A DNA stretch of 64,000 bases from IMGVR_UViG_3300022602_000024:186001-250000; one strand, 5' to 3'. Positions 3,037 through 9,967 are shown, numbered from the stretch's first letter. Program-made: numbers and translations. Notes: generated by a model from the letters alone, not told the origin.

Positions 3037-3399
3037 TTATTCATCTTTGGGCCATTCCCGCCATTGCCAACCTAACTTCCGGAAGTCTTCTTCAATTTCT
3101 TCTGTGACTGTACCTTCAGTGACATAACCTGATGTGTATTCACCTTCGGTCATTATGCCTGAGCAATACCAATCAAGATAATCGCCTTGCTCTAATATGT
3201 CAGCAACGATTCCGCCGGCACTGCGCCAACTACAACTCCACCAATCGTCTCGCAGTATGGGAATAACATCTCGACGCTGCCATTGCGTATTGCACAAGGC
3301 AGCATAGATATTTTGTGCGTACCTTTGGCTGGCTTGTGCCTTGGCCACAATCCAATCAGTAGTATACAGATCTTGCGCAAGATTGTCGTGGTTAGTCAT
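3037..3399 (-). CDS. Conserved phage hypothetical protein (paralog of 889..1254)
   Basis: YAQNIYAALCN, WSCSWRSAG, WYCSG. Confidence 0.75.
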   Translation of the reverse strand: MTNHDNLAQDLYTTDWIVAKAQASQRYAQNIYAALCNTQWQRRDVIPILRDDWWSCSWRSAGGIVADILEQGDYLDWYCSGIMTEGEYTSGYVTEGTVTEEIEEDFRKLGWQWREWPKDE

Positions 3400-3649
3400 T
3401 TAAAATTTTAATATCTGTTACATTGGCCACACGAAAACTGCGCCATTCCTGCTTATCTATGCAGTAAGCACTAACAACTTCAGCGTTGACCTTTTTGGGT
3501 TTCTTATCCTCTTTGATGGGTGCTGGAGGAATATGTGCTGAATTTAGTGTACAAGGCATAACCCGCACACTTCCATCTACCTTGGTAAATGTTACTTCAC
3601 AGATGTTTTCTGTGAGCATTGTTTTGATTTGTTTGTTTGTGTAGGTCAT
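3392..3649 (-). CDS. WYL_2/SH3-like (DUF2693, T4 61.1-like) protein
   Basis: VTFTKVDGSVRVMPCTL ... D.KQEWRSFR motif. Confidence 0.7.
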   Translation of the reverse strand: MTYTNKQIKTMLTENICEVTFTKVDGSVRVMPCTLNSAHIPPAPIKEDKKPKKVNAEVVSAYCIDKQEWRSFRVANVTDIKILND

Positions 3650-6376: not shown

Positions 6377-6722
6377 TTTGCACTCCTGCGATATGTCGGC
6401 AAGCACCTCGGAATTTGAACCCACTACAGGTGCAACTGTACTGATTGTCATTTAAACTCACAGTATAAGTATCGCCCTTGCTTCCTGCCACCGACCAAGT
6501 TTTAATACTGCTGTCTTTAACAGGTTCTTCGAACCCAAAAGTATTGGGGATTTCTTTGAATTTTCTGCCACGTGTATCTAAACGCATAGGAGTAGAAAAT
6601 CGAAACACTGAATTGGTGCCGGCACGCACATAAGCAAACATTTTGCTTTTGGAATCATCTGTGATGTAGATGTGATTGGGAGTACGTCCTTCCCATGCTG
6701 TTGTTTCTTGCAGAACTTTCAT
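6369..6722 (-). CDS. SWIM zinc-finger protein
   Basis: YSCTCSGFKFRGACRH (CxC...CxH). Confidence 0.8.
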   Translation of the reverse strand: MKVLQETTAWEGRTPNHIYITDDSKSKMFAYVRAGTNSVFRFSTPMRLDTRGRKFKEIPNTFGFEEPVKDSSIKTWSVAGSKGDTYTVSLNDNQYSCTCSGFKFRGACRHIAGVQNG

Positions 6723-6931
6723 TTTACAAATAACCCTACAATATAAATGGCTAACAGGATACCGTTGACAATGATTAGATTGGTTTCTCTAATTCTAACG
6801 GCCCAGATTAAGTATAACACAGCTCCTGCGTTGAGCAAATAGATATTGAGTGGATCTATACGAAAACTGGTGCAAAGTGCTCCTAAAACAACACTAGCAC
6901 AACCTAACCATTTTAACATTGTATTAATCAT
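6719..6931 (-). CDS. Small membrane protein
   Basis: Three hydrophobic helices; start MINTMLKW after SD. Confidence 0.6.
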   Translation of the reverse strand: MINTMLKWLGCASVVLGALCTSFRIDPLNIYLLNAGAVLYLIWAVRIRETNLIIVNGILLAIYIVGLFVK

Positions 6932-7039
6932 CTGCTTCTTTTTCCTTACTATGTGTATATTATAACACGTTTCGGACTTTTTGGGCAAATTTGGGTGTTG
7001 TTTTTACACTACAAAAAAGTAATACTTCAGTACTACATT

Positions 7040-8155
7040 TTAAACACCCAAGTTGTAGGACTTAGACCATATGGGTTTTAGTTTACCAATACCGCCAGGT
7101 GTAACAAACGCATTTTGATTTAAAAAATTGTAGAACTTTTTGTCTGACAAAAAATTATAAATTGATCGTAGATATGTCATTCCCACTTTGTTTTCTGCAC
7201 TTATTATATCGCGTAAAAATTTTTCTCCGTTTCTAAGTTGCAAATCAGGAGTTACTTCTAAGCTATAATATCCTTCGGAGGAACTGATATATATTTTTTG
7301 AAAAGCACTCATACCAGGTATTAACTCTGGGTGCCGCCCGTGTATGTTGTAAATTAATTGATATTCGAGCTTATTTGTTTCTCTGACACGTGGATCGGCT
7401 ACAAGATTTGGTTTGTCAGGTCTTGTTTGTTGTATCATTTTCAAGGTATTTTTTGCAATATGACTTTGTTTTAAATTAATCATTGGTTCGAGAAAAAAAC
7501 AATCAATATTTTCGTGTCCAAATGACAGTGAAGACAAGATATCATTTTGTTTACTATACCAATAAGGTGCTTCGTAATAAACTGAAGATTTTTCAAGTCC
7601 TAATACAACCACATAATCGGTATCATTGTATTTTCTCTGACAATAAATGTTAAAGTATTCAGCATCAGCGGCCCGTCCCACTTTTAAAAAACGACCCTTA
7701 TTTTGAAACATCCAGTCATCGCCGTACTCAGGATGTTCTTCGTAAATTATATTATCTTTATCAACTGTGGGTAGTTTAACAACTGTTATTTCTGTTGTTG
7801 GGTCTGGATGATTTTCGACCATCCATTTTGCATGAGCATTGATGGTAGTGATGTCGTCAACAAACACCATTATTTCGTCTATATGAATATTGTTTTGTAC
7901 AAAAATATTGTATATGGTATGGCTATCAGTCCCCCCAGACCAAGGAAGTATGATTTTCTTATGTTTGTTTCTAAGGAAGACTGCATGGCGAGTCATTAAC
8001 TCGTCTATGGTTTCTACCGGGTCTTGAGTCCAATTCAGTTTACTGTATTCAGCATCGAAACAATAAAATGTAATTGGTTTGTTGGATTTGTAGGACTCGT
8101 AATAAGCAAGATAAGGGTTATATAAGATTTTATTATTTACTTGATAATGTAGCAT
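7040..8155 (-). CDS. PP-loop (adenine nucleotide alpha-hydrolase-like) ATP pyrophosphatase family protein
   Basis: WSGGTDS PP-motif near N-terminus; substrate unknown. Confidence 0.65.
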   Translation of the reverse strand: MLHYQVNNKILYNPYLAYYESYKSNKPITFYCFDAEYSKLNWTQDPVETIDELMTRHAVFLRNKHKKIILPWSGGTDSHTIYNIFVQNNIHIDEIMVFVDDITTINAHAKWMVENHPDPTTEITVVKLPTVDKDNIIYEEHPEYGDDWMFQNKGRFLKVGRAADAEYFNIYCQRKYNDTDYVVVLGLEKSSVYYEAPYWYSKQNDILSSLSFGHENIDCFFLEPMINLKQSHIAKNTLKMIQQTRPDKPNLVADPRVRETNKLEYQLIYNIHGRHPELIPGMSAFQKIYISSSEGYYSLEVTPDLQLRNGEKFLRDIISAENKVGMTYLRSIYNFLSDKKFYNFLNQNAFVTPGGIGKLKPIWSKSYNLGV

Positions 8156-8169
8156 AGGAGTTTGAAGAG

Positions 8170-8491
8170 ACTGGTAGCTTATTCTGTTACGAGGAAAGCT
8201 ACCGAAACCCTAAGCAGTGTTTAGGCTGCTAATGCGAACAGTTCGTCGTTTGCGTTTACGTTTTTTGCTTCTACGACCGGGTTACCCCAATCCTAACGGG
8301 TTTCACATTCCCGAGCGCCACTATTCTTACTCTTTGCCCAATCGATCACCATGTCAGGCCCATCATAAAAACACAATACCAAAGTAAATTTACAGTGAAT
8401 ACCAAAGTAAATTTATGCTCTTATGGTGGACCTGGAGGCTTCGAAGCCTCTTCTTGAACACTTTTCTTAATAACAGTTTACGCTGTTCAAG
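8170..8491 (-). ncRNA. ssrA: Circularly permuted (two-piece) tmRNA: acceptor piece ~8491-8424, intervening segment 8423-8362, coding piece 8361-~8170
   Basis: Acceptor stem GGGCCTG (8361-8355) pairs with CAGGTCC-A-CCA (8434-8424) with G3:U70; tag ORF 8253-8221 = ANDELFALAA*; helix 2 pairings TTGGGCA/TGTTCAA and TAAGAATAGT/ACTGTTATTA; CCA half lies upstream of 5' half. Outer ends approximate. Confidence 0.93.
8375..8415. repeat. 18-nt direct repeat in the tmRNA intervening segment
   Basis: AATACCAAAGTAAATTTA at 8375-8392 and 8398-8415. Confidence 0.95.
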
Positions 8492-8557
8492 TATTTATTA
8501 TATGGTATGTCGAAACCATTGTCAAGCGGTTTTACTTGGTTTCGACTAAATAATATT

Positions 8558-9055
8558 ATGCTACACAAACATCACATTATCCCAAGATATCTAGGCGGGA
8601 CAGACGATCCTTCTAATCTAGTTGAACTAACTATAGAGCAACACGCAGAAGCACATCGACTACTTTATGAACAACACGGCAATTGGCAGGACTATGTTGC
8701 GTGGCAAGGACTTGCCAAACTTGATGCTAACTTTGATGCCGCTAAACAATCTATGCTGGAAGGTAGCAGAAGAGGAACAGCCACGATGATTGCTAATCGT
8801 AAAGGAAAAAAGTGGGAAGAAATCTATGGGAAGAAAAGAGCCGCCAAAATAAAATCTAAATGTAAATTAAGTCGAAATGGCAAAACCTGGAACGGCAAAC
8901 TATATGAAATAACTCACCCAGATGGGACTGTGGAAACAGTTGAAGGATTACGCCAATGGTGTTTAGATCGAGGTTATAATCCTAACAACTTTGGAAACGC
9001 TTGTTTGAGAGGTGGTGTAACAAATGGTGGATTTAGGATTAAAAGGTTGGTTTAG
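8558..9055 (+). mobile_element. Free-standing HNH homing endonuclease (likely start MLHKHH at 8558)
   Basis: HKHHIIPRYLGGTDDPSNLVELTIEQHAEAH motif, basic NUMOD-like C-terminus; TAAATA 5 nt before ATG. Confidence 0.85.
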
Positions 9056-9179
9056 TTCTGTGGATTATTTTGAATCAAAGAAAAAGACACATTGGTATAA
9101 TGATGGGTCTAAAAGTTATTTGTTAAAAGTTGGAGATCCCAAAGTAGAAACATTAGGATTAGTTAAAGGAAGGATCTAA
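9024..9179 (+). CDS. Small ORF with endonuclease-associated WYNDG..GR module
   Basis: Manually read MVDLG...HWYNDGSKSYLLKVGDPKVETLGLVKGRI; +1 frame overlap with HNH end. Confidence 0.4.
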   Translation: MVDLGLKGWFSSVDYFESKKKTHWYNDGSKSYLLKVGDPKVETLGLVKGRI

Positions 9180-9180
9180 C

Positions 9181-9222
9181 ACCGTCCAGAACTCCTTCGC
9201 CCGGAAGGGATTACAACTATTC
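9181..9222 (-). pseudogene. Putative remnant of an older tmRNA acceptor piece truncated at the T-stem
   Basis: ...CCTTCCGGGCGAAGGAGTTCTGGACGG| aligns with GTGTTCAAGAAGAGG of the functional piece and stops where the HNH cassette begins. Confidence 0.5.
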
Positions 9223-9223
9223 T

Positions 9224-9310
9224 TTACTTCATATGATTGTTATACCAGTCCCATGCCCAGAAACCGAATACGATTGCAACCATTAGACATCCTAAATATA
9301 CATCATCCAT
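9224..9310 (-). CDS. 28-aa membrane peptide
   Basis: MDDVYLGCLMVAIVFGFWAWDWYNNHMK; perfect TATAAATA 5 nt upstream. Confidence 0.55.
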   Translation of the reverse strand: MDDVYLGCLMVAIVFGFWAWDWYNNHMK

Positions 9311-9524
9311 ATAGTTATTTATACCATTGAAAAGTATTTGAGTGCCAATTTATGCGTCCGGTACTTGCGTATTCTCGTGCAACAGCGTATAGCTTGGTTA
9401 TATCAGGAACTCCGACCACGCCAGTTGAGCCCGCTAGTTAGTGCGTCCACTAACCTACCCATGTTTCATCTCAAACACTTATCAATGGTATGTGGCACAC
9501 TTGGCGCCACAAGCCATTTTGCAT

Positions 9525-9851
9525 TTACTCTGCTACAGTTTCTGTAGTCTTAGCACGAGCCGCAATAGCTTCAAGGCTAGGCTTAACTTTAGCGGCCTTA
9601 GTAGTCACTTTGCCATTGTACTTGGCATCAGCGTCATCAATGGCTGCACGATATTCAGCATTGGCATACAACTCTGTGGTCTTAAGGAACGTGACCAACT
9701 CAGGCTTGGTCATTGCTGAAGGCAAGTCCATGAGCTGAATATCGCTATCAGTCTTAGCAAGAATTTTGACACGAGTCATGTCAGATGCGAAACGCACTTT
9801 GTAACCAGACTTAGATTTAGAAACACCACCAACGTTAAATTGCTTATCCAT
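9525..9851 (-). CDS. Hypothetical protein with K/A-rich tail
   Basis: ORF; SD GGAG before MDKQF. Confidence 0.7.
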   Translation of the reverse strand: MDKQFNVGGVSKSKSGYKVRFASDMTRVKILAKTDSDIQLMDLPSAMTKPELVTFLKTTELYANAEYRAAIDDADAKYNGKVTTKAAKVKPSLEAIAARAKTTETVAE

Positions 9852-9967
9852 AGTAAAAAACTCCATTTGTTAAATTGAAAAAACCAATACAGACACACTC
9901 TGTATATTCAAATTATAGTTGATTTCGATTTCTGTGTCAACCATATTCTGAATTCTTTTTACCGAAA

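Follow-up and report, generated by a model that had tools for sequence, protein, structure and literature searches.

A likely intron-less homing endonuclease cassette at the T-loop position of a two-piece phage tmRNA gene

Homing endonucleases are thought to survive in essential genes only with the help of introns or inteins, or else to reside between genes. Several described systems come close to the locus reported here. The free-standing endonucleases of phage T4 include SegB, SegE, SegF, SegG, and MobE, and the closest of them is SegB, which sits in the tRNA cluster, recognizes DNA encoding the T-psi-C stem-loop, and drives the inheritance of the tRNA region (PMC2330249). Group I introns, some of them with LAGLIDADG genes, occupy the T-psi-C loop of standard bacterial tmRNA (PMC11915505). 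Integrase islands and prophages restore the tRNA and tmRNA genes that they split and leave a displaced fragment behind (Islander, PMC4383910). Two-piece tmRNAs are already known in phages (PMC9004378). In the literature that was searched, a permuted tmRNA gene harboring an endonuclease cassette without an intron was not described.

The locus lies in a window of 64,000 nucleotides, i.e., the whole stretch of DNA that was analyzed and to which all positions given without a locus name refer. It stems from the 354-kb IMG/VR phage contig IMGVR_UViG_3300022602_000024, which is called a jumbo phage. A blastn search with positions 7900-9900 yielded no nucleotide match among the INPHARED phages. The features of the locus are collected in Table 1. 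The explanation that we favor, and regard as likely, is that the gene HNH1 encodes an intron-less homing endonuclease, the cassette of which occupies the T-loop position of a phage two-piece tmRNA; cleavage and immunity are inferred.

The cassette shares with the T4 Seg and Mob systems a free-standing gene without intron or intein, a presence/absence polymorphism, and the co-conversion of flanks, and with SegB it also shares the apparent target, the T-arm-coding DNA of a tRNA-like gene. In contrast to the seg and mob genes, which are intergenic, it lies inside an RNA gene and displaces the 5′ end of that gene, which it restores by means of a promoter and a duplicated, recoded 5′ segment. In addition, the enzyme belongs to the HNH type, whereas SegB is a GIY-YIG enzyme; yet GIY-YIG relatives are found at the same spot in the loci L007 and L051. 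With the tmRNA group I introns, the cassette has in common that a mobile element has invaded the same T-loop sub-site and that gene function is preserved, but there is no ribozyme and no splicing, and continuity is restored in the DNA by duplication. No match to the Rfam family Intron_gpI was obtained in the window at the gathering threshold or in the region 8900-9600 at E <= 10, and the layout is not that of a group I intron, as the HNH gene is followed by a promoter and a complete acceptor piece, not by the 3′ half of a T-loop.

The Islander elements also provide a replacement for the displaced gene part, and the fragment marks the end of the element. However, the cassette is only about 0.9 kb long, shows no integrase or att recombination, and replaces a 5′ end together with its promoter rather than a 3′ end; only a permuted gene allows this. 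The sole coding content of the insert is the HNH ORF and the remains of a second HNH gene (HNH2); the lack of a tyrosine integrase and the replacement of the 5′ end both speak against an integrase island. Finally, in I-HmuI (PDB 1u3e), too, an N-terminal HNH motif of the beta-beta-alpha-metal type precedes an extended DNA-binding region, but I-HmuI is intron-encoded and HNH1 is not, and the C-terminal domain of HNH1 has no recognized family.

Table 1. Position and content of the features at the tmRNA locus in the window
Feature	Position	Strand	Content and evidence
Coding piece of the working tmRNA	8163..8361	minus	acceptor 5′ strand GGGCCUG, P2 strand, tag ORF; 8311-8361 belongs to the imported block
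Intervening segment	8362..8423	minus	62-nt spacer containing a direct repeat; in native alleles 300-400 nt with an ORF
Working (imported) acceptor piece	8424..8485	minus	new P2 strand, T-arm, acceptor strand, CCA end; Rfam alignment
Cassette promoter	8497..8525	minus	sigma-70, TTGACA-17-TATAAT, 12/12 consensus; placed to drive the working tmRNA
Perfect 10-bp inverted repeat GTCGAAACCA/TGGTTTCGAC	8509-8518 / 8537-8546		brackets the -35 hexamer; repeat search
Intact HNH homing endonuclease gene HNH1	8558..9055	plus	165 aa; antisense to the tmRNA; PF01844, phrog_655
Fossil of a second HNH (HNH2)	9056..9179	plus	C-terminal domain ending in HWYNDGSKSYLLKVGDPKVETLGLVKGRI and a stop codon; tblastn to L048
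Native acceptor-piece 5′ stub	9182..9224	minus	42-base fossil; P2 strand, GGAC, first T-arm bases; cut in T-stem/T-loop
Recently transferred block	8311..9226		99.7% identity to L066, 3 mismatches in 916 nt

The working tmRNA, the stub, and the endonuclease genes

An Rfam scan revealed one circularly permuted tmRNA on the minus strand (8163-8539). The model RF01850 matched 8539..8163 with 85.6 bits (threshold 84) and RF04321 matched 8485..8221 with 94.9 bits (threshold 47), and the region 8163-8485 thus scored above the curated thresholds of both covariance models for a two-piece tmRNA. The acceptor stem is formed by GGGCCUG (from 8361) and CAGGUCC, which is followed by ACCA; its third pair is G-U. 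The tag frame (8253..8221, minus strand) encodes ANDELFALAA and ends, as expected for a tag, with LAA and a stop codon.

An atypical T-loop and a missing gene call are among the points that count against the favored explanation. The T-arm of the working copy is GAGGC-UUCGAA-GCCUC, and its loop, UUCGAA, comprises 6 nt instead of the canonical 7 nt of a T-psi-C loop, which appears as a deletion in the Rfam alignment. A departure of this kind would be expected of a recoded target site, although the function of the working copy is unproven. Within IMG/VR, this T-arm allele was found in this contig only; it is identical in L066. ARAGORN did not call a tmRNA anywhere in the window. This result is uninformative, because the tmRNA of L008, which is free of the endonuclease, was also missed.

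The intervening segment of the working tmRNA contains an exact 18-nt direct repeat (8375-8392 / 8398-8415, spacing 23 nt). The native, endonuclease-free permuted tmRNAs of this group harbor protein ORFs in the intervening segment. In L065 it is a NifU/IscU-like gene (7020-7403; PF01592, E 7.5e-55), in L063 an ORF of 104 aa (179-493) without a Pfam family.

The same promoter block accompanies HNH1 at other loci, and the inverted repeat is kept beside HNH1 in L011, L015, L017, L018, and L019. The repeat is a candidate for a cassette operator or a recognition element. The motif of the inverted repeat, GGTTTCGAC, is at the same time the motif that is conserved close to the 5′ end of the coding piece of the tmRNA.

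The stub reads AAGAATAGTTGTAATCCCTTCCGGGCGAAGGAGTTCTGGACGGTG on the minus strand (9224..9182), and it includes the hairpin and GAGTTCTGGACGG located at 9222..9181. A first nhmmer profile of acceptor pieces was built solely from three endonuclease-free relatives (L003, L004, and L008). Its top match in the 64 kb was 9224..9173 with an E-value of 3.3e-6, and the next match had an E-value of 0.36; the working copy was not reported by this profile. With a broader profile, the stub was retrieved at E 1.2e-8. The stub can be aligned with the intact alleles of L003, L004, L008, L063, and L065, and it occupies the position of the tmRNA 5′ end in the syntenic loci L003, L004, and L008, about 300 nt past a conserved gene of 113 aa, with a small membrane ORF immediately before the stub. 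When 8900-9600 was scanned against Rfam at E <= 10, the stub returned no tmRNA match because it is too short. The nhmmer alignments stop at the T-loop in seven of eight loci, and the alignment of L013 extends further with low posterior probability. In the group of loci with the junction GGGTTCGA, the homology ends at the end of the 7-nt T-loop; in the type represented by the window and L013, the junction lies a few bases earlier and is decayed. By homology, the stub belongs to the native acceptor piece, and its end lies in the T-arm. The possibility that the stub is part of a whole decayed acceptor piece, which runs antisense through the 3′ end of the HNH gene up to CCACCA, was also considered and was not supported by these alignments.

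The P2 helix was used to determine which acceptor piece fits which coding piece, and standard pairs were counted at 15 positions in the Rfam register. The working acceptor piece forms 14/15 pairs with the coding piece of the window, as required for a P2 helix, and 6/15 with that of L063, which is of the native type. For the stub the order is reversed, with 8/15 pairs with the window coding piece and 13/15 pairs with that of L063. Both P2 strands have been replaced together. The initial annotation had compared only a short part of the helix, with GTTCAA pairing fully with TTGGGC of the coding piece and GTTCTG less well. This is correct (6/6 and 5/6 pairs), and the contrast in the full register (14/15 versus 8/15) is larger. 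The in-register pair counts were used because duplex free energies did not discriminate between the stub and the working 5′ half.

HNH1 has an ORF without stops, and its length equals that of relatives with 52-75% identity. It exceeds the cut-off of PF01844 (21.7 versus 21.4 bits) and matches phrog_655 with E 1e-20. The residues H5, H6, N20, H29, and H33, which make up the catalytic motif HH...N...H...H, are invariant across 9 relatives. An AlphaFold model with a pLDDT of 73 had I-HmuI (1u3e) as its best fold match in the PDB, but the match is weak (E 8.5e-3, TM 0.31, 16% identity), and a sequence search of the PDB yielded only marginal matches to the HNH motif. A scan of a bacterial genome collection revealed no full-length HNH1, only relatives of the N-terminal domain in MAG contigs.

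The 124 nt that follow the stop codon of HNH1 contain, in a different frame, the HNH2 fossil, the stop codon of which abuts the stub. The fossil matches the C-terminus of an intact HNH protein of 209 aa encoded at L048 161..790 (tblastn, E 2.6e-9). Both the fossil and its contact with the stub junction had been overlooked in the initial annotation. As the fossil follows an intact HNH1, two endonucleases have occupied the site in succession; and because the stub junction abuts HNH2 and not HNH1, the enzyme that made the junction may differ from the one now present. HNH1 and the frame at 9024-9179 were also considered as one frameshifted gene. This was rejected, because the HNH1 relatives all end at the stop codon of the window and because the C-terminus that the downstream piece matches is that of another HNH protein, from L048. 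The gene in L048 (161-790, minus strand) represents an intact second HNH type, in which the N-terminal nuclease domain is the same and the C-terminal domain differs. It has the orientation of the tmRNA strand and extends with its 3′ end into the start of the acceptor piece.

Empty sites, the transferred block, and other loci

Metagenome contigs were scanned with the 5′ half of the stub, and 13 matches were obtained. The initial annotation had predicted HNH-free relatives in which the sequence of 9181-9222 is joined directly to a T-arm and CCA. This was borne out in 9 of the 13 contigs, including L063, which shares the small upstream ORF with the window, is 95.7% identical over 9322-9184, and has an intact T-arm and CCA. 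The junction of the window is also present in L059, L062, and L066, in a different upstream context. L063 is the empty-site counterpart of the window, and L065 is the empty-site counterpart of the L066 context; in each of them the 5′ half runs on into a T-arm and CCA, and a presence/absence polymorphism thus exists at the orthologous site in both cases.

The comparison with L066 defined the recently transferred block. Below the block, the identity is about 90% at 8230-8310 and lower further down; above 9226, it drops to the random level, and the upstream flanks of the window and L066 are unrelated. One edge of the block coincides with the first base of tmRNA homology, the other lies just past the P2 strand of the coding piece. 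The block comprises the stub, the HNH2 fossil, HNH1, the inverted repeat with the promoter, the new acceptor piece, the short spacer, the acceptor 5′ strand, and the P2 strand. The 3′ end of the tmRNA in L066 resembles that of its own empty-site relative L065, as would be expected if the conversion tract had ended inside the gene. Lateral spread with co-converted flanks is thus documented by the 916-nt block and by the presence of the module in 10 unrelated contexts. The block boundary was set by the L066 comparison and not by likeness to L003; a native, L003-like origin of the coding piece below 8314 remained ambiguous, because L011, L019, and L020 share this segment.

A gene of 371 aa (7040-8155, minus strand) lies immediately downstream of the tmRNA and is missing from L063. 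As L063 runs straight to a homologue of 6719-6988, this gene represents a separate indel. It resembles a PAPS-reductase-like PHROG only weakly and shares 34% identity with an ORF that follows the tmRNA of L003.

Across 10 loci, the stub, HNH1, and the promoter are 69-100% identical, and the 600-nt upstream flanks have no detectable similarity. Fifteen IMG/VR stretches match the 17-mer that spans the junction (GGGTTCGA followed by YTAAGCCTG), two of them (L049 and L055) without the usual stub context. Eight of the 10 full-length HNH1 relatives in IMG/VR are divergent and adjoin a permuted tmRNA, and the working tmRNA that comes next is on the same strand. A working tmRNA is also present at most further junction loci with enough downstream sequence. 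At some loci, small genes separate the cassette promoter from the tmRNA. In L016 and L055, the junction is present and the available sequence contains no tmRNA, which counts against the favored explanation. Two further variants were found. In L019 and L020, the HNH gene lies upstream of the tmRNA and there is no stub, a point against the favored explanation; this could be the ancestral free-standing arrangement. In L048 and L051, the stub is accompanied by a 15-nt scar of the HNH1 3′ end and the gene is gone; we take these scars to be signs of an endonuclease life cycle.

The T-arms of the various alleles were compared as well. GGG-TTCGA is present in all stubs with the GGGTTCGA-type junction; among the empty alleles, most carry GGG-TTCGA or GGG-TGCRAAT. 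Of the 11 working copies linked to HNH1, 7 have the T-arm GAG-TTCGAnT-CTC, with a compensated pair change adjoining the junction. The sequence GGG-TTCGA is kept in the HNH1-linked working copies of L013, L043/L045, and L020, and a change in the T-stem is therefore not a universal route to immunity. The tmRNAs linked to GIY-YIG genes (L007 and L051) have the T-loop GGCAGTG instead of TTCGAAT. These differences could reflect target-site immunity, but resistance is inferred from the sequences and enzyme data are lacking.

Three observations were made at individual loci. The GIY-YIG genes, which are SegE-like, lie directly upstream of the permuted tmRNA and on the same strand (L007 2884-3681; L051 8233-8988, minus strand). 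L051 contains an inverted T-arm fragment, GAATCGAACC, beside the HNH1 scar. In L013 (about 3255-3400, minus strand), the tag region has long insertions in comparison with all other alleles, suggesting an unusually long tag frame.

The homing explanation and its alternatives

In the favored explanation, the starting point is the circular permutation of the gene, which places the T-loop only about 45 nt from the gene's 5′ end. The cassette, read along the tmRNA strand, would consist of the antisense HNH gene, the sigma-70 promoter together with the 10-bp inverted repeat, and an entire new 5′ part of the acceptor piece. Because it brings its own promoter and a new 5′ portion, a full tmRNA precursor would be transcribed, and the resident 5′ stub would stay upstream as a decaying fossil. 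The enzyme is inferred to cut endonuclease-free alleles in or near the DNA coding for the T-arm. The break would then be repaired from an endonuclease-bearing genome, with the stub providing the left homology arm and the tmRNA body the right one, which is likewise inferred. Co-conversion would carry the donor promoter, along with the acceptor piece and the P2 strand that matches it, into the recipient and would give rise to mosaic tmRNAs. The altered T-arm of the linked allele plausibly protects against the enzyme. In this view, the site has been invaded repeatedly, as seen in the HNH2 fossil of the window and in the GIY-YIG genes or HNH1 scars of relatives.

The central reading of the initial annotation, which had been made from sequence alone, was that an endonuclease split the acceptor piece and brought its own replacement. 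All sequence features that it had listed were confirmed at their coordinates, and the reading is supported by the comparative evidence, with the enzymatic steps being inferred. The replacement part is supported by the 916-bp block in an unrelated context, by the joint P2 swap, and by the cassette-specific promoter that travels with HNH. The new promoter proposed for the working tmRNA also held, and the idea that the permuted architecture enables a 5′ replacement has been adopted in our explanation. Targeting of the T-loop and a cleavage-resistant, recoded tmRNA remain inferences without enzyme data.

The alternative that survives best, albeit an unlikely one, is that the HNH gene is a bystander. 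The enzyme would be inactive or have another target, the stub would stem from one illegitimate recombination, and the block would have spread by homologous recombination at the conserved tmRNA among co-infecting phages. In favor of this view, the HNH gene of L019 and L020 is simply located upstream of a stub-free tmRNA, the tmRNA alleles of these phages are mosaic anyway, and nuclease genes often lie at phage recombination boundaries (PMC10448857). However, the T-loop position of the junction is constant across 10 unrelated upstream contexts, the stub type follows the local lineage (A in the window and L013, B in L015-L018), three endonuclease families (HNH1, HNH2, and GIY-YIG) converge on one spot, and the block boundary is the start of tmRNA homology. 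Together, these observations fit break-initiated gene conversion better than random recombination.

A second alternative is that the working copy was not imported but arose by local tandem duplication of the native gene, with divergence at a later time. It could be argued that SegB promotes the segmental amplification of tRNA loci (PMC13096335) and that the working copy shares its acceptor stem, GGGCCUG/CAGGUCC, with the native L063 and L065. Nevertheless, this is very unlikely, because the P2 type of the working copy and that of the stub differ in both strands, L066, where the context is unrelated, matches the entire block at 99.7% identity, and L063 and L065 can be aligned with the window tmRNA in the coding piece only, with about 82% identity. 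An assembly artefact or a chance resemblance is all but excluded: the window is a metagenome-assembled contig, but the junction and the block are found in at least four independently assembled contigs (window, L059, L062, and L066), and chance is contradicted by the E-value of the stub profile (3.3e-6).

If the homing explanation is correct, the locus represents a third route for endonucleases in addition to introns or inteins and intergenic positions, i.e., an element resides inside an RNA gene and the damage is repaired in the DNA by its own promoter and a duplicated, recoded segment. This route is possible because the tmRNA gene is permuted. The locus would be a natural example of mobile nucleases that generate mosaic phage RNA genes, it provides empty and occupied alleles in matching pairs with which the recognition of T-arm DNA targets can be studied, and it implies a greater tolerance of the tmRNA T-loop for sequence change than is generally supposed. 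The displaced 5′ tmRNA stub can serve as an annotation signature for such cassettes.

A bolder reading goes beyond the homing explanation and is about as likely as not. The permutation of tmRNA would have opened a niche in a structural RNA gene for intron-less cassettes that bring a promoter and a replacement for the 5′ segment. Endonucleases of at least three lineages (two HNH types and one GIY-YIG) would compete for the T-loop, and an arms race would recode this normally near-invariant loop of functional phage tmRNAs. The 6-nt loop UUCGAA, the loops GGCAGUG and UGCAAAU, and the compensated G-C to A-U swap in the T-stem would be examples of such recoding.

A structured element and promoters upstream of the stub

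A conserved, structured non-coding element is located at 9321-9491 (minus strand), between the 113-aa gene and the small ORF. It has a closing stem of 22 bp, and RNAalifold predicted 50 pairs from four sequences, 11 of them with compensatory changes. The element has no Rfam match, and it is also found in L005 and L006, neither of which yielded a tmRNA. It may represent a new phage RNA, although it is only a candidate at present.

The sequence TATAAATA (9323..9316, minus strand) lies at the 3′ edge of this element. The initial annotation had regarded it as the promoter upstream of the stub. This is not supported, as a -35 element is missing, the sequence was not detected in a promoter search, and it lies at the edge of the structured element and precedes a conserved small ORF; a promoter function is thus improbable. 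A second sigma-70 promoter with a 12/12 match to the consensus was found at 9912-9940 (minus strand), upstream of the 113-aa gene. It might have driven the native operon, which would have comprised the 113-aa gene, the RNA element, the small ORF, and the tmRNA.
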